Source of the DNA: Lytechinus pictus | Lineage: Eukaryota | Assembly: GCF_037042905.1 (NCBI RefSeq) | Contig: NC_087251.1 | Coordinates: 3,906,001-3,970,000, forward strand | Direction of reading: 5' to 3' | DNA length: 64,000 nucleotides | Shown: positions 53,501 through 63,650 of the stretch, piece by piece | Numbering within the stretch: position 1 is the first letter of the stretch | How the letters are laid out: each line of letters starts with the position of its first letter | The notes under the pieces: model-generated | The model's input: the letters and a program-made list of their open reading frames with translations, nothing else | Databases searched by the model: none | Told to the model about the DNA's origin: nothing | Translations under genes and position numbers: made by a program

Positions 53501-56500
53501 AAAGCTTCGCATATTTTCCGCTCGCATTGATCTGCTACAATGAGCCGCAATTTTGTTGAAAAGCGGCCGCAGAGCGCTGTCCGACCATCGCCTCTGCGCT
53601 GGCGCATCCGGCGCCCGTGCCGTTGGGCTAGCTGCATGCACGTTCCATACAGTCAGTCCGCAAGCCCTGAAAAAGTAGCTTCTTTTATCCAAGTGATATT
53701 CATGACTAGAGGGTTTTTGCAAAACACCTCTTTTTATTCGGCCATTGCTGCTCTAAATATTGACCAAATTTCATGTTTTTGGTATCTTTGTAAAGAAGAA
53801 GAATCATTCTTTTAGGTCATGTGTTTGGATTTTTAAAAGAATGTTGTAATATAGGAAAAACTTTTGATCTAAAACATGAAACAAAATATTTTTTTTCATG
53901 CAACAAAAGTTGCTGTTTTCACACTTAATTTCTGTTTGGGCACAAATGATTTTTAGATCATGATAAAGCTGAAGATCTAAGCTTTAATATGATATAATTT
54001 TTATAAGAAGATGTATTTTAGATGGGTCAGCAGCCAGCTTTTCATAGGCCAAGTACATTTTGCAGCTCAGAAACTAGAATACTGCGCTCTGATTGGTCAT
54101 AGACCACACACCCACGCAAATTCCAATGTTCCCCACACTGGACCTCTGCACGGTCACACTCACCATGTGGTAATCTCTTCAAATTGCCCGCGCCTGTTTG
54201 TTTTGAAAACAGTATTCAGCCAATCAGAACTCTGGATTTTATGTTACTCAGAAATTTCAGAAATCTCGTCTTGCATCTTGATGGAAAAAGCTGGCTGCTG
54301 ACCCATCTAAAAGATGCCACATATCAAGAGTGACATTGTAAGAAAGTATAGAGTTTGAGCTTTCTGATGATATAAATAATGTTGGTGCCTAAAACACAAA
54401 ATGTTGCACAATTTGCAAGTGAAAACAGAGGAAGAAAATTCTGTTTGATGCATCTTTTCAGGTAAAAAATTCACTTATTTATCAAAATATTTCATTCAAA
54501 AGAAATAACCAATATAAAAGAGTAACATTTACTCTTGCCCATGGTACAAAAATAATTAATATTACTCAAGGAGAAAGTGGTTAAATTCTTTGAGAAAGAA
54601 AGTCTCACAATTCACGAGATTTTGCAGGGACATGAATTCAGCCACGAGAGGACTTGGATAAATCTTGCTCATTTGCTCATTAACACAGGGGCTTGCGGAC
54701 TGACTGCATAGGGATGCATACGCACTCACACGCAAGCGACCTGTTCCAAGGACCCCCATTTTCACAAACATTTGTAGTTCCGAAGCCCGTTCCGAGGACC
54801 CTCCTTTTTACAATAAGCCTGCTCCAAGGCCCCCGTTTTTTGTCTCGCCAGCGGCACATACCTACTACTTTTTTGGTCGAGTACCCCCCCCTGTGCTACA
54901 TGTATTACACTGGCTTCTGGCTTGCCTGCATATAATTCACAAACTTTCTCTACTCCTTGGAGAGCATTCCGACAAGAGTTTCCAAACTAAATTGCTAGGC
55001 ATTGGCTTTTGCATCATACCAGGTACCCATTTCAAGATTATAAAAAGTCAGATTTTTCTCTTTTTATCCAGATCAACTTTTTGGGGTTGACTTCCCTTTT
55101 ATACACTCTTGAAATAATGAAGAAAATACTCTTATCAAAGTTACTTTATGTGATATGTTTTTACAACTGCGTAGCCAGGATTTCATTTTGGAGGGGGTGG
55201 TAAATGCACGCGAAGCGTGCCAACACTTACAGAGCACGCGAAGCGCGCTCCCTAGGGTTGGGTGCAGGGAGGGTGAGTTTCCCCCTCCCGCGCGAAGCTT
55301 TCACCGTCTCTCTTGTCTCTAGTACCTATATCAGCTCCCTATCAGTTGACTATATTGTGATTTTGAACTTTGTTTTTAAAAGTGATTGTGAACGCACAAA
55401 AAGGGATAAAATGGAGGAAATTAAAATAAAATTTACCCTGCGCAAAGCGCGGAAGCTACAGCATTTTATCAAGTTTTTTTCTAAAGAAAAGGGTATTCCC
55501 TAAGTTATACTATATACTGAATGCTTCCCATGGAAAGATCAGATTTTATTACAAACAATTTAGTGACAGTGCATATTTTTAACTCGCAAAACAAGAAGGG
55601 TATATGCCGGAAGATATTCCTCCCCGTGCAGAGCAATTAAACTCTGAAATTTCAAAGGGCGGACGTTTCATCAAATGCAGAGATCTCTACCCCATCGGCT
55701 CTAATTCAATTGATTTTCTAAGATTATTAAACTTCATTACAAGGAAAATAGTACGCAATTATATAAATTATATAAAAAAGGATGATGTATAATTTCTTTG
55801 ACATATCCTGAAGTGCTTAATTTTGAATGATTAAGAAATCTAAGTGTCATTCAAAATTTCAAACTGAGGGCGCAAAACAGCACAGGAGATGAATGTGCAG
55901 GGAAATTTTAATAGAATTTGGTTTTAAAATGTTGTACTTTTTTTATCTAATACAACACAAATTTTATACCTTCCTCTTTTTAAATTAGGAACCTGTTTGC
56001 CCCCAATGATGGTTGTTTAGTAGGGTAGACCAGGGTTAGTTGGAACGCGGCGTAAGTTGAAACATTGTAATTTTCTTTAACGTCTTTAAATAAATTTCTG
56101 CAATACTGCCCTCAATTATCAACAGCCATCCACCATATTACAGACAAAACATGTGCAACAAGCCTGGTGAAGTTAGAAAAGAATTTTTGTTTTTTGACCT
56201 TCTGAGTAATTTTTTTCTCTTTCAGAAATGTTTTATTATTTCAGAGAAGTTTATTAATCAATGTAAGCTTATAAACGTCAAATGGGCCTCCGGGGTTAGT
56301 TGGAACAAAATTGAAGGGGCTAGTTGGAACATGTTCCAACTTATCCTAAACATAATTATGAATAAAAATATATAAAGTATTTCACACTCTTCTGAACATG
56401 TATTGTATACCATGCTTGTTTTGTTTATCAGTTCGGTCTGAGTGTGCATTTAAGGCTTACTGTAGGCCCCTAAAAAGGCCCTAATGCAATATTTTAACCC

Positions 56501-59500
56501 TTATCAAACTGGGGGGGATCAATTTGAGCCCCCCCCCCCTCGAGAAATTTGGTCACTACGCCGTTGCGCGAATTTTATTTACTACACTGTTCGCTTACTT
56601 GTTACTTTCAAGTCTTGCGCATCATTTAACACCAAATTTGCGATGCCTGTGTGCGCGGTTTCGAAATTACGCAACATTTTGTACGTGCATGTCGGACCCA
56701 AAATTGCTCAAAAACGTGATTTGATGTACAAGGTCAATGCAAATTGTGTTTTTCAACCAAAAGTCATAAATGTATGACTATTTTTTACTTTTGTTGGTTC
56801 AAATAGATTTATTTTATGCTATTTATGATCGCAAAAGAGTCCCGACAAAGTTCATTGGAAAAAACAAAGGTTCGAAAAAACAAAGAAATACAAAAAAAAA
56901 AAAAAATAAGAAATTATATTTTTTGCAATTTTTGTTGGATATTTGTTATGTGAAAATTGATACTCTCACCAAAAATTAGCATTCTACTAGCTTAATAAAT
57001 AGAGTTAAAGGCACAAACATACCAAAAAAAAACAAATTTAGGGCAAATTTCATATGCTTATTTGCATAATTAATGAAAAAATATAAACAATTAATTTTTG
57101 TCTAGTAAATTTGATGCAGAAGTACATGAAATTGCTGAAAGTACACTTAATTGCATGTAAAATCAAACGCACCCAAATATGCGGAATTCTACTACACAGT
57201 CTGCTTGCGTGAGTGGCTGTATAATAGAAAACATAAAGTTCAACAAATCCACACTTCAAATAAATAATGCAAATAGGCTAAAACCATGTAATATTACAGT
57301 TTTAAGTAGTTTTAGTATAATTCTTAATTGACCATGCAGTGTTCCAACTTACCCCATACCATGTTCCAATTTACCCCGTATTGGGGTAAGTTGGAACGTT
57401 TGCGATGGTCTTTTTCAAGGTGGATTTTTTTCAGTAACCATAATAGAGTTAAAAATTTTATGGGGTACATTTGAAGACCTTAGATATATGCTTCAAGCTG
57501 ATATATTGATTGTTTCTCGAATAAAATCTATTTGGATTTTACAGCAATTTTTGTCAAAAATGTTCCAACTAACCCCGGTCTCCCCTACTGAGCTGAAGAG
57601 TGGGAGAAGTTGCCTATATGGAGGTGACAGCAGATATTGATATAAAGATTTTACCCGCCCGGAGTCAACCTGACCAGAAGTTGCGCGATCAATTTGAAAA
57701 AAAAAAAAACTTCATATACTTCGGCCTCTTATTCCATGCCCTACATGTAATGTATACATTTAACCCTAATCGGCAAGAAACACATAGCTGAGGTGGAAAA
57801 ACAGGGTTAGGGAAACAAAGGAGAATTGTAATTTTGTTATTTAACCGCGCACAGCGCGGAAGCAAAATTCATATATATAAATTTAGAGCAAGAGTGAATG
57901 AGTTTCTCTTTCGAGAAAAAGAAAAACCCACAAAGCTACCTTTCTTCCCTTTCCTCCATTCGCTTCTCCTCTCTTTTTTCTTTTTTTTTTCTTTTTGGGG
58001 ACGTTTTGGGAGGGGCGAACGCCCCCCCCCCTGGCTACGTGCCTGTGTTTTTACATGATACTACATCTGATATGGCAATCAGTCGCTGCCTACATAAGTT
58101 AACACTCCCGTCTTTCTCAAGTAGGTTTGTTTCAATTGATGAATGTCGGGTGGTAGTTTTTCATACAAAGAAATCTGCACCGGCTTAAAAGGAAACAAGA
58201 AAGCAAGATTTGAGGGTATACATGTAGTTAGTAGTGGCTTTGCACCACATACTAGCTATAGTCTTGCCGTATCACTTTCACAGGCACTTTTTTGTAGGTG
58301 TGAGCCCCGGCCCGGGGGGGGGGGGGCTCTTCCATTGATGAGTGGATACCATGCGTAAAAAACAAGTAAAAATGATCTCTTTTTCAAAATAGGGCACGTT
58401 TCGTACGTAACATAAGGGTGCCAAAAACCCTAAAATAATGAAACAAGGGTGTCGCTAAGGCTAGACAGCTGGCAGCTGTCTGTTTCGAGGAGTTTTTAAA
58501 CTTTTTTTATATTTCTCCTCGTACACAGACGGCTCGCTATCGTGCAGCCACCATTAGGGGGTTACCGGTTAACAATGCAAAATTTCCCAGACGAGGCTCA
58601 TCGATTTATGTCTTTATTTCATAAAAATATATAAAAAGAACTGTACCAAAATAAAGATTGTTATTCCATTATGGCCTGAAATGCACCAAAACGGGGAAAA
58701 ATAAACTCAAAAGGGGAAAAAACAGTGATTTACTTCGGCTATCGCGCAACTTCACTTCCCTGTTTTATCCGAACTTAATACATAAACATATGGCCATTGG
58801 GTCACTGTACAGATTGAGCTAGAACTTCGGTCTCTGTATTACTATTTGGTGAGTGGAGTCAACATAGTTCAGCGGAACAACCAACATAACAGAGACCAAA
58901 GCTTTTGGTCTACGCAAAGGCGAGCACATAATACGCCCTCCTGAAAGGTGGAAAATTGAGTTATTGGTCAAGCAAGAAAAGTGGAAGGTGGCCACTTTCC
59001 CTTTGACCATCTGACCTCAAAATCAAAAGAATTGCTGAGATCCATGCTAGTATCATACACACCAAATTATATGAGCCTAGATTAAGTTTAAACTAAAGTT
59101 ATCGCGTTTACAAGGACTTCAGAAGGGTACGATGAAAACATGTCAGTGTGACCTTGACCTTTGACCTTTTGATCTAAAAATCAATCAGTCAGACGGCAGG
59201 TCCCAAGAAAGTGGCTTCTTTCATCCAAGTGATATTCATGACTTGAGATGTTTTGCATATTTAATGAGCTTGATGCGGACCAAAACACCTCTTTTCATTC
59301 GGTCATTGCTGCTCTAATTGTGCATCGAATTTCATGAATTTGGTATCATTGTAAAGAAGAAGAATCATTCTTTCAGGTCATGTGTTTGAATTTATTCAAA
59401 GATTTTGTAACATAGGTTAAAATTTTGATCTAAAATATGCTACAAAACAATTATTTTCACCTGACAAAAGCTGCTATTTTCACACTTTATTTTTGTTTGA

Positions 59501-62500
59501 GCCCTAATGATTTTTAAATCATGATAAAGCTGAATATGTATGCTTTAAAATGATATAGGTTTCAAAATAAGAATTGGTTTAATCGGGTCAAGATCACACT
59601 TTTCATTTGCCAAGTACATAAAGCAGCTTGAAAACAAGAATACTGCACTCTGATTGGTCAAAGAGACCACACACTGCCAAATTCCAACAGTTTCAGTGCC
59701 TGGGTTCATGGGAAGGTCACACTTCCCATGTGGTAATCTCCTCAAATACCCCGCGCCTGTTGTTCTGTGAACCTTATCCAGCCAATCAGAACTCTGGATT
59801 TCATGCAAGTACAAAATTTCAGAAATCTCGTCTTGTACCTTGGTGGGAAAAGTGTGATCTTGACCCGATTAAAAGGTGCCGCATATCAAGAGTGGCATTG
59901 TGGGAAAGTACAGAAGTTTAGCTTTATGGTGATATAGATATCATTGAGTCTCAAAATAAAAAGTTTTGCACAATTTGCAAAAGAAAACAGAGAAAGAAAA
60001 TTCAATTTTGAGGCACATTTTCAGGCCAGAAATTTACTTATTTAACAATATATTGTATACAAAATAAATGACCAATATGAAAGAGTAACATTTACTCTAT
60101 CTGATGGTGCAACAATATTTCATTTAACTTGAGGTTAAAACAGGTAAATTCTTAGAGAAAGAAAATCTCACAAATCACGAGATTTTGCAAGGAGGATTCA
60201 GCCACGAGATGATTTGGATGAATCTGGCCTTTTTGCTCATTAGCATAGGGACCTGCGGTCTGACTGCAATAGGCTTCCTGGGATCCATGCTAGTACCATA
60301 GTGATGTTATTAAGAGTCTCTAGGGTGTCTGGAGAAAAAAGTTAGGCCTATATTTCTTTTATGAAGAAAATATCACATTTTCTCTGTGAATTTGAATAGA
60401 AATAACTTTCAGACTGACAGAAATGTAAAATTTTATGGAAAAAAATCCAATAATGGCTGCAAAAAAGAAGAATAAAATCAGGTCAATTTTCAGCATTTTC
60501 CTGCCATAGACTGTGTAGTTAAGAAATAGACACACACAAATCCAAATTTTCATCATCATCATCTGCTGTAATCTTCAAAGGGCTCTGCAGCCTATCTCAA
60601 AGATGCACCAAAATTTGTAGCTCCCCAATCTACCCCAGTCCTGTGTCTCCCTTGTTTTGCACGGTCGACTCCTGGGCAAAGTGGGCCGGAGCTCCCTGGG
60701 TTAGACAATCAGCGCCTAACAGGGGTCGGTGGCCAGGGGGGGGCAAGAGCCAAAAATTTCCCGATCATATCATGGTATGAACAGGCGCATAATGGTGTAA
60801 TGAGGCGACAATTTTGAGAGAGCCACATATTGCGTATCGGGCAGAATTTATCTTTTAAACAAAAGTTGCGGGCGAGCAAAAATGTTGACATTTTTAATAC
60901 AAAAATCAAATTTTGTGATATCCAGAGAATAATATATTTCTCCCTTTTCTCTTTCCATTCCTTTTTTGTGGTCTGTACGTCACTGTAAACAGGATTCTTT
61001 GCGGCAGGAGCGTGAATAGTAAAACAAAAAAAAAGAGGGGCGCAGTATGGTGCATGCGCTAAAAAAGCTGCTTCATATAAGTCCCGAGCGAGCGAAGCGA
61101 GCAAGAAAAAATCACCTTTTCATGAGAATCTAACTTTGAGATATGTTTTGACATTATATTCAGTAAAAAATCATATCCTACACTTTTCCTTTGCTTTCCT
61201 TTCCTCCTTGTTTTTTGTTCTTGGTTGTAGAACTTTTAAGGGCCATGGCCCAACGCTACCATACTCATATATACGACAGTGCTATGTGGTTGGGGTCCAG
61301 GGCAGAGCCCCCGGAACTTGATATCCAAGCCATTTAAATCTCGCAGATTGCCGCTATTTTAATCAATACAGAATATAGCTTTTATACAACACATTCTCAC
61401 ATAGATGAAGAGCCCCTACTGCGTGGGGTCTGGGGCAAAGCCCCGGTAGCTTATTTGCATAAAATTTAGCAAGCTAATAGTACAATGTTGTATGCAGTCT
61501 ATCTTTTTTCCCGCTCTTTATTTTTAATCCTCGGCAGCCCGGTCGTGTTATGAAGTTTGTTTTTTTCTTGTCCCTTTTCTTTAATTGTTTTCCAATTTAG
61601 CTTTTGACTAATTCTATTTTAACTTCATTTCCCGCTATTGTTTGCCATTTTGTCATCTTTTAATTTATTTCCCATCATGCTATTGCATTACAGAGGCTTA
61701 TTACGGAATGATTTGTTCTTTTTCAAATGTTCTTCTTTCGTTCCTTTTCCCGCTTTCCTCCCTTCTTTTTCTGTTTAAAATTTTTTTTATCGTTTTCTTT
61801 TCACTTTTATCTTACCTTTTCCGCTTTCCTTCCCCTTTCCCTTTTTTTCTCCCTCCCTTTTCTCTTTTTCCCATTAAAAAAAATATTTTCCCGGTGAAAT
61901 CCGCCGGGGGGGGGGGGGCTGCTTGCCCCCCCCCCCCCCCCCCGCCTGTTACGCCACTGAGCTGATGGCAATCTCAACAGTCAACACACAAATAAGGGTT
62001 TGCAATTTATCTCTAAATCCTTATTTGAAATGATCATAATAGATTAAACTTGTCCTTACTGTCAAAAGAAGTCCCTGAATTTTCTCTTTAAATACATCCC
62101 AAACAGTCATTAGTTAGAAATCAATTCAGATCACATTTTTTTAGCAGCCTGAATTTTCTGAAAAAATGTGTCATATTTTCCCCCTTATTGGCCTTAATCA
62201 GCCTGTTTTATGCTGACACTTTTCACTCAGTGTGGCTTCAGACACCCTATTAAGACAGTTCTGAAACTAATTATATCAGCATAATCAAAACTTCTGTTAT
62301 AATTACTAATCATGCTATTTTTTGCCTTGCAAAGACGGGGCAGGCTCGTCATCATTAGATTAGTCATCAGCTCAACACAGCCACAGGCAAACACATCGCG
62401 ACATTCGCTTTATATAGTAACGTTGCAGCCTGTGCAGGCGCAGCACGCAGACAGACAGCTGATCAAGCCAGGTTTTTGTTTTGTTTACCTCTCCTCCGGG

Positions 62501-62715: not shown

Positions 62716-63650
62716 CTTTAACGCTAATTTATCACAATCAAATGACACTTTAAAAAAATTAAAACAAAATTTAAAATTAATGTTTCCTTTGAGGAGCATT
62801 TAAGTAGTTTTAAATATTAAAAAAATAATATTATCATTACATAGGATATTATTTAAACCTATATTTGTGTATTATGATACCGGTATTTTGACAATTGTAA
62901 AACTTGGCAACGCATGAGGCGACGAGCTGTTCTTGATCACAAACTTCAGTTATGGCAGATGATGTCATTATGCACTAACACGGTAATTCGCTGTAAACAT
63001 GGCCTTATATGGATCAGCGAATAAAAATTATTCCAGAGTATACCGGTCTGCCGAAAAGTAGTTAATTAGATTTTATCCAGTGTTCATGGACTTCACTTTT
63101 TTTTAGAGGGGGGGGGGGGGGGTGGATTGGTTAAAAGATCTAGTTAAAGAACTCAGTCAGTCGGCAAGCCCTCAAAAAGTAGCTTCTTTTAAAGTGATAT
63201 TCATGACTAGAGCTATAGTAGTCACACTGGCGTAAATCGATCCCGGGAGGGGGGGGGGATGGGGGAATATATCCCCCCCCCCACTTTTCGAGGAGGGGGG
63301 ATGGCCTGTACAAACATCCCCCCCCCCACACTTTTTACGAAAGAAATGAAAAAAAAATCACAAGAGATAATTGTTTTATTGGTGAAAACTCTTCCTAAAA
63401 TACCGCTTAACAAATAAAACAATAAAATGCAAATAAAGAGCCAGTTCACCATTTCCAAACAAAATACTTATGTCCTTATTATAACATTGAAGACAAACCC
63501 CGTTTCTTCCAATTCATCAATGTAGGGTCTTTGGGAAGGGATTAAGATGGAATGTCAAAAAAATATGAATGTAATCTCTAATAAAACCATTATAGACCAT
63601 CAGGGTAAACAAGATAATAATATTGGAGGGGTATTTGCCATATGGACATA

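Follow-up and report, generated by a model that had tools for sequence, protein, structure and literature searches.

Some DNA transposons carry a second pair of cis-acting sites inside their arms, away from the ends. Examples are the Tc1-like elements with an inverted repeat/direct repeat (IR/DR) architecture, i.e. the Sleeping Beauty type and Tc3, and the P element with its internal 11-bp inverted repeats. In these elements the spacer between outer and inner sites is unconserved; in the IR/DR elements, which are flanked by TA duplications, the inner sites are copies of the outer site. Galileo has several binding sites for its THAP transposase inside long inverted repeats, and the binding differs between subfamilies (PMC3688188). 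Its target duplications are 7 bp long, and its internally repetitive arms are 98-100% alike within a copy (PMC3573991). Short non-coding derivatives consisting of the two repeats are common, and one arm can be copied onto the other during repair (PMC3688188, PMC3573991). Perfect inverted repeats are also created and repaired by template-switch mutations, as described by Loytynoja and Goldman in 2017 and by Monttinen and Loytynoja in 2022 (PMC5453318, PMC8794818). Here we describe a family of short transposons represented by two copies, E1 and E2, in a 64,000-nt window of the Lytechinus pictus genome (contig NC_087251.1, positions 3,906,001 to 3,970,000). Their 27-nt inner inverted repeats, the inner arms, differ between the copies and are perfectly paired within each of them. 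With moderate confidence we favour the view that the inner arms serve the transposase or its synaptic complex as a second pair of cis-acting sites, with a symmetry that is kept by selection on the master elements.

Symmetry along the element

E1 and E2 are about 80% alike and have the same orientation in the window. They are inert copies from two deep lineages, A and B, into which the sampled copies fall and whose consensus sequences are 80-81% identical. The aligned sample comprised 40 copies found with a core motif on one contig, unbiased by type, as well as the 30 loci nearest E1 and the 30 loci nearest an old copy. The features of both elements are the following, with positions counted in the window.

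53646-53649, no strand: left target-site duplication of E1, CATA, matching 54707-54710
53650-54706, forward strand: E1, A lineage (middle-aged A layer), 1057 bp, aligned, 96.4% identity to the A-burst consensus
53650-53667, forward strand: left terminal inverted repeat of E1, CAGTCAGTCCGCAAGCCC
54016-54042, forward strand: inner left arm of E1, TTTTAGAT-GGGTCA-GCAGCCAG-CTTTT, 27 nt, 100% paired
54043-54285, forward strand: core of E1 between the arms, containing CTGATTGG at 54089-54096 and a central GGTCA
54286-54312, reverse strand: inner right arm of E1, exact reverse complement of 54016-54042
54689-54706, reverse strand: right terminal inverted repeat of E1
54707-54710, no strand: right target-site duplication of E1, CATA
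59182-59185, no strand: left target-site duplication of E2, CAAT, matching 60267-60270
59186-60266, forward strand: E2, B lineage, 1081 bp; sampled B copies are 95-97% identical to it
59186-59204, forward strand: left terminal inverted repeat of E2, CAGTCAGACGGCAGGTCCC, with one mismatch to the right end
59578-59604, forward strand: inner left arm of E2, TTTAATC-GGGTCA-AGATCACA-CTTTTC, 27 nt, 100% paired
59605-59846, forward strand: core of E2, including a 9-bp hairpin at 59707-59730
59847-59873, reverse strand: inner right arm of E2, exact reverse complement of 59578-59604
60248-60266, reverse strand: right terminal inverted repeat of E2
60267-60270, no strand: right target-site duplication of E2, CAAT

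The initial annotation had described the arms of either copy as exact reverse complements of each other, which is borne out at every position of 54016-54042/54286-54312 and 59578-59604/59847-59873. Its account of nine arm differences, every one of them mirrored in the opposite arm, with TTTA, GGGTCA and CTTTT common to both copies, is likewise correct. The arms are 243 nt apart in E1 and 242 nt apart in E2. As had been noted before, the enclosed cores can be aligned, share one orientation and carry inverted CCAAT-type boxes, which in E1 are CTGATTGG (54089-54096) and CCAATCAG (54220-54227). The best-kept block of the whole family, CAGCCAATCAGAACTCTGGATTT (54217-54239), also lies in the E1 core. 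Relative to the 1082-bp consensus, E1 is about 25 bp short near position 80.

Left and right halves are related beyond the arms. Throughout its length the left half can be aligned with the reverse-complemented right half, so that the element is a decayed palindrome. The left-right identity of its parts is as follows.

80 nt on the core side of the arms: 45-46%
positions 21-100: 46-47%
80-200 nt on the outer side of the arms: 55-63%
terminal 20 nt: 85-90%
inner arms: 27 of 27 positions

Hence the inner arms are the most symmetric part of the element, above the transposon ends. Since the flanking sequence reaches a left-right identity of just 59-63% over the 80 nt on the outer side of the arms and 45-46% over the 80 nt on their inner side, the perfect pairing of the arms is far beyond chance. 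The 27-nt repeat forms the innermost part of a longer repeat that is degenerate. A short non-coding segment bounded by perfect inverted repeats could be mistaken for a transposon of its own, and the initial annotation had named an old nested miniature inverted-repeat transposable element (MITE) as one alternative for these inner 297 bp. We regard this as very improbable: no target duplication is found at the arms, which are flanked by GATGTA and GATGCC in E1 and by ATTGG and AGGTG in E2; the left-right similarity continues outward for some 80 nt and more; and none of the 40 core-motif copies is a solo inner segment, all of them carrying sequence of the outer element.

When the A and B consensus sequences are compared, the arms differ at positions -3, -2, -1, +1, +2, +4, +6, +7 and +8 relative to GGGTCA, in each case with the matching change on the other side. 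These nine account for most of the 14 mirrored differences of the element; three more lie in the terminal repeat and two just inside it, so that the five terminal ones all fall within the terminal 40 nt. Among about 240 other comparable left-right positions there is no mirrored A-B difference. Positions that are paired in both lineages and yet different are therefore confined to ends and arms, and the arms evolve as the transposon ends do. The limits of the arms are nearly identical in A and B. The claim that the outer terminal repeats co-vary by copy can be upheld for positions 8, 14 and 16, which are mirrored between the A and B consensus sequences; positions 8-10, on the other hand, are unmatched in several sublineages. 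GGTCA or its complement TGACC occurs seven times per element against 1.2 expected. All seven occurrences are conserved between A and B, and symmetric pairs are found at 191/883 and at 401/676, the latter being the arms.

Some smaller symmetric features were seen in the core. The centre of the E2 core contains a perfect 9-bp hairpin, CATGGGAAG GTCACA CTTCCCATG (59707-59730, about 515-540 of the family consensus), which has one mismatch in the B consensus and no counterpart in the A lineage. Near consensus position 585 there is also a hairpin of 4 bp, in which one A-B change is compensated. Read outward, the CCAAT-type boxes (54089-54103 and 54220-54235) give CAATCAGAGCGCAGT, which agrees with the terminal CAGTCAGTCCGCAAG at 10 of 15 positions. 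The idea that the element halves are units of about 480 bp with their own ends was dropped, as by a rough estimate about three matches of this quality are to be expected by chance.

Lineages, timing of change and decay

The family was characterised by searching E1 against its own 812-Mb genome. The best 40 of about 2,000 first-look candidates were scored; all are full-length and most are 96% identical to E1. A 23-nt core motif has 1,448 matches genome-wide, on many contigs, and the copy number of the family is at least 1,400, with a probable total of roughly 1,500-2,500. Terminal inverted repeats of 18-19 nt starting with CAGTCAG were seen in about 80 copies. Identical 4-bp flanks, AT-rich and following no fixed sequence, were seen in 66 of the 77 copies in which both ends are canonical. 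The longest open reading frame encodes 54-96 amino acids and is unconserved between groups. Because of its terminal repeats, the constant-length 4-bp duplications at unrelated sites and the many dispersed, near-identical non-coding copies, the family is a non-coding, non-autonomous cut-and-paste DNA transposon with a length of about 1,082 bp. The 4-bp non-TTAA duplication is one that we take, as an assumption, to fit the Sola, Ginger or Chapaev type. The family has been active very recently, and it is also present in RNA and DNA reads from three other organism labels that were mapped on 54000-59900. Apparent joints between E1 and E2 in these reads are artefacts, caused by homologous copies that run off the ends of the mapped stretch.

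Two pairs of copies were found head to tail. In one of them (C15:26726406-26728583, L016) two A-burst copies are 14 bp apart; in the other (C20:9238799-9240944) a 96% copy and a 77% copy are 1 bp apart. The family may thus have a tendency to insert beside itself.

The A lineage comprises three age layers, the copies of which are 3.1%, 2.8% and, in the burst, 0.6% from the consensus of their own layer; B copies are 1.6% from theirs. Among about 90 aligned copies only the A and B arm types occur, one per deep lineage and with no exceptions, and in a family of at least 1,400 copies just these two types and one old intermediate were seen. The intermediate is the right arm of L047, an old right-half fragment whose left arm is missing. 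At right-half sites where A and B differ, L047 agrees with A at 45, with B at 38 and with neither at 15; at the nine variable arm positions it agrees with A at six and with B at three, and no third state occurs. Its terminal repeat is intermediate as well. Further copies of this third lineage, the few relatives of L047, are located at C3:40972526-40973023(-), C2:37329594-37330080(-), C4:6723553-6724041(+), C5:26017250-26017726(-) and C2:8538317-8538749(+). Three other older, diverged copies are A-like (L034 and L070) or B-like (L052). When the branch points of the old copies are ordered along the path from A to B, using right-half sites, their distances from A are these.

A: 0 right-half sites
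L070: 7 right-half sites
L034: 26 right-half sites
L047: 38 right-half sites
L052: 49 right-half sites
B: 91 right-half sites

All nine arm changes map between points 26 and 49. On the B side beyond point 49 there are no arm changes, as opposed to about 4.8 expected over both arms. Therefore, the arms changed in an early burst, partly blockwise, and were static afterwards. Searches for further intermediates remained negative within their reach. Mirrored arms of the L047 type had no exact match genome-wide, the power of such exact words being low for old copies. Hybrids of an A arm and a B arm at the right spacing were absent from the genome as judged by exact 14-mers, which are blind to old, decayed copies. 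The search for a third arm type, which required C or T at the first of the variable positions, gave 14 matches, all of which are single-base variants of A or B.

Thirteen of these 14 are A copies with a common G-to-C change in the left arm (C8:39.9-42.3 Mb, C8:26767482, C37 and C62). None of the 13 matched the paired-arm pattern, which implies that their right arm or spacing is altered. Nine of them are on the same strand within 2.4 Mb of contig C8 and look like the segmental duplication of one insertion. The old copies have peculiarities as well. L034 (C1:743669-745291) combines A-type arms with B-type, ancestral-looking terminal repeats, and it has a 106-bp insertion in mid-core (636-743) with inverted ends of its own, GTAATAATAATAAT...ATTATTATTAC, which is probably a nested small MITE. 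L052 (C1:26450076-26451106) has a 100% identical twin at C21:13933745-13934775 and no other close relative, which suggests either a segmental duplication or a duplicate in the assembly.

Once inserted, the copies do not keep their arms matched. Not one of 51 private arm substitutions in 89 copies is mirrored, and at singleton non-CpG sites the arms decay, in each of the four groups, at the rate of the remaining element. In the A lineage the arm edges have even been altered on one side only. The oldest A layer has TCTT opposite TTTT and 25 paired nt, the middle layer has the 27 paired nt seen in E1, and in the youngest burst CTTTT became TTATT in the right arm alone, leaving 22 paired nt. As this 22-nt burst is the most uniform and most numerous set of A copies, i.e. 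the one that was amplified most, the full 27-nt symmetry is not required. No sign of an active mechanism correcting the arms is seen in inserted copies. With private mutations unmirrored and arms decaying at background rate, the perfection of the E1 and E2 arms is inherited from the founders of two subfamilies. The initial annotation had proposed a mechanism that keeps the arms identical while letting them diverge fast. What stands of this is that the arms are lineage-specific, were paired in the founders and lie among the faster-changing parts of the element, in the top 7-12% of 27-nt windows without being extreme; an ongoing process is not supported, with 0 of 51 substitutions mirrored. The ordinary account which that annotation had set against its own proposal, young copies of two ordinary subfamilies, thus holds for E1 and E2.

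The genome-wide data also bear on two functional readings of the enclosed segment. With 27-nt inverted repeats on either side of a core that carries inverted CCAAT-type boxes, the arms had been suggested to be recombination sites of an invertible, promoter-like cassette. Cores in the opposite orientation were therefore looked for at the A and B junctions of the whole genome, and none was found for either type, against 669 normal B junctions. About 90 of about 90 aligned copies are colinear, and RNA sequencing reads are equal on both strands and without discrete ends. The probability of a cassette is thus close to nil. Alternatively, the arms might be paired for the sake of double-stranded RNA, as a small-RNA precursor made from read-through transcripts. 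A perfect 27-bp duplex would be a substrate of Dicer size, and RNA sequencing reads of a related organism label do fall on both strands of the element. Against this, 75% of the RNA reads continue into unlike flanks and no read ends cluster at the arms, and a scan of 53600-60400 with the Rfam covariance models gave no match at E values up to 1. Moreover, selection for an RNA useful to the host cannot explain a trait of the amplifying master of a selfish element. We therefore consider a role in RNA improbable, if less so than a cassette or a nested MITE.

Paired sites, arm copying or a DNA stem

As the founders were perfectly paired and all A-B differences are mirrored, either both arms were under selection or one arm was copied onto the other in the masters. 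Among the three candidates put forward in the initial annotation, i.e. subfamily-specific transposase binding sites, conversion in a hairpin intermediate and an invertible cassette, paired transposase sites fit best. The symmetry of the arms was kept while their neighbours fell to about 60%, both lineages have nearly equal arm limits, and mirrored changes are found at the ends and in the arms alone; from this we infer a paired cis module that is selected in the masters and serves in protein binding or synapsis. The element started as a palindrome, the halves of which later drifted apart. Two modules were kept two-fold symmetric in the masters, namely the termini and a GGGTCA-centred site of 22-27 nt about 390 bp in from each end. 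The putative transposase or its synaptic complex would use the inner arms together with the ends. If a master needs two matching sites, only variants that had changed alike in both arms would have been amplified further, and template switching in palindromic DNA, with copying from arm to arm, may have eased such matched change. Both the presence of internal binding sites within long inverted arms and subfamily-specific binding have a precedent in Galileo.

Several observations weigh against such a module. Neither a transposase nor an autonomous partner was found, the 40 best candidates scored in the DNA searches all being short copies. The contrast between A and B amounts to two deep lineages and single old copies, of which L047 has no left arm. 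Two inner-edge positions are unpaired in the most prolific recent burst. With 33% A-B difference against a background of 19%, the arms do not change more slowly than the rest of the element. In local alignments against shuffles the similarity between terminal repeat and inner arm is not significant (P = 0.06 for A and 0.30 for B), so that the inner arm is no obvious second copy of the terminal site. Finally, 9 of the 11 positions that adjoin GGGTCA are different in A and B and yet stay mirrored. Were GGGTCA and the T-rich edges all that is read, there would be no need for this, so either all GGGTCA-adjacent positions matter or copying was involved.

This last point leads to an explanation in which arm-to-arm copying in the masters, by template switching or by repair of a hairpin or cruciform, produced the mirrored changes as single multi-base events, and in which base pairing is the selected trait, if there is any. 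The changes are grouped in blocks beside GGGTCA (-2, -1, +1 and +6 to +8 on the B side) and fall into a short early interval, which suits multi-base events. Five of the nine are transversions, so there was no stepwise passage of the G-U type, and arm divergence that is no slower than the background is expected of conversion and not of ordinary compensatory evolution. The common TTTA and CTTTT edges could act as switch points, single-strand folding is far above that of shuffles (z = -6.0 and -8.3), and template switching is documented to generate and mend perfect stems (PMC8794818, PMC5453318). However, a constraint is needed in addition, since the arm limits of A and B are near-identical and the arms remained static later on the B side, with no changes where about 4.8 are expected. 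There is no sign of conversion in inserted copies (0 of 51), one-sided edge changes have become fixed in A sublineages, and the remaining long palindrome was not homogenised. The simple form of this explanation, a swap that left A with the old left arm and B with the old right one, is ruled out by the mosaic arm of L047. On balance we find copying as a full explanation possible and rather doubtful. It could have acted alone, with pairing being selected, or have supplied the mutations while selection favoured two equal sites.

A related proposal is that the arms act as structure. For transposition, the 243-nt core would have to be closed by an internal hairpin or cruciform of DNA, the stem of which the active masters would keep perfect by template switching from arm to arm. 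We consider this unlikely.

Should the structural proposal hold true, this would be a cut-and-paste family of eukaryotes relying on an internal DNA stem, with pairing conserved and sequence free to jump. In either case the family is a natural test case for the use that DNA transposons make of internal cis sites and for the way in which two-ended sites shift their specificity without losing symmetry. This value rests on its abundance, its youth, the two lineages that were active in parallel and the sharply bounded, symmetric internal module. For genome annotation, E1 and E2 are two ordinary repeat copies; they represent no switch, gene or RNA.

Surroundings of the two copies and related systems

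The window contains a further piece of the family, together with other repeats.

63154-63212, forward strand: truncated left-end fragment of the same family, with an older A-type end, CAGTCAGTCGGCAAGCCCTC...

This 59-bp fragment sits between long G and C runs (63100-63300); G or C runs of 10-14 are also found at 56526, 58020 and 58313. Between E1 and E2 there is another element of about 1.57 kb (56019-57589) with 28-nt terminal inverted repeats, AGTAGGGTAGACCAGGGTTAGTTGGAAC (93% match), and several internal copies of GGGTTAGTTGGAAC in both orientations. E2 itself is nested in a different repeat, as 60267-60300 resembles 59024-59057, 160 bp to the left of E2 (82% over 34 nt). In contigs of other runs, joints that lead back by 117-138 nt occur at 59035-59185, which suggests a tandem repeat of variable copy number.

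With regard to known transposons, piggyBac and Kolobok can be dismissed, as TTAA is found in just 3 of 66 copies and the termini are CA..TG in contrast to the RR..YY of Kolobok (PMC9587614). KolobokP composite-like transposons occur in echinoderms, including sea urchins, and in bivalves; they have long terminal repeats of about 450 bp with short inverted ends (PMC9587614). Their solo repeats are surrounded by 3-5-bp duplications, the long repeats are direct, and the termini are 5'-RR and YY-3' (PMC9587614). This group was rejected as well, since our family has CA...TG ends and a palindrome instead of direct repeats.

The Tc1-like IR/DR elements share the principle of an inner pair of sites. 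Unlike them, the present family has inner and outer sites that are not significantly alike, inner sites about 390 bp in from the ends, and a 4-bp duplication of varied sequence in place of TA. The resemblance to Galileo and further Foldback-like elements of the P superfamily in Drosophila lies in the long inverted arms with internal sites, which in Galileo bind the THAP transposase. The differences concern the duplications, which are 4 bp here, and the arms, which are 45-63% alike outside two short modules; neither the 7-bp duplication nor the near-identical repetitive arms were found, and the family was not assigned to this group. Also, the THAP protein is a feature of Galileo, whereas our family is known from non-coding copies alone. 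The template-switch studies dealt with the human genome and with RNA genes and not with transposon subfamilies that re-specify internal sites. Nevertheless, the mutations described there resemble those in the inner arms in that a single event is able to write several mirrored changes into the two arms of a stem, which fits the blockwise early burst.

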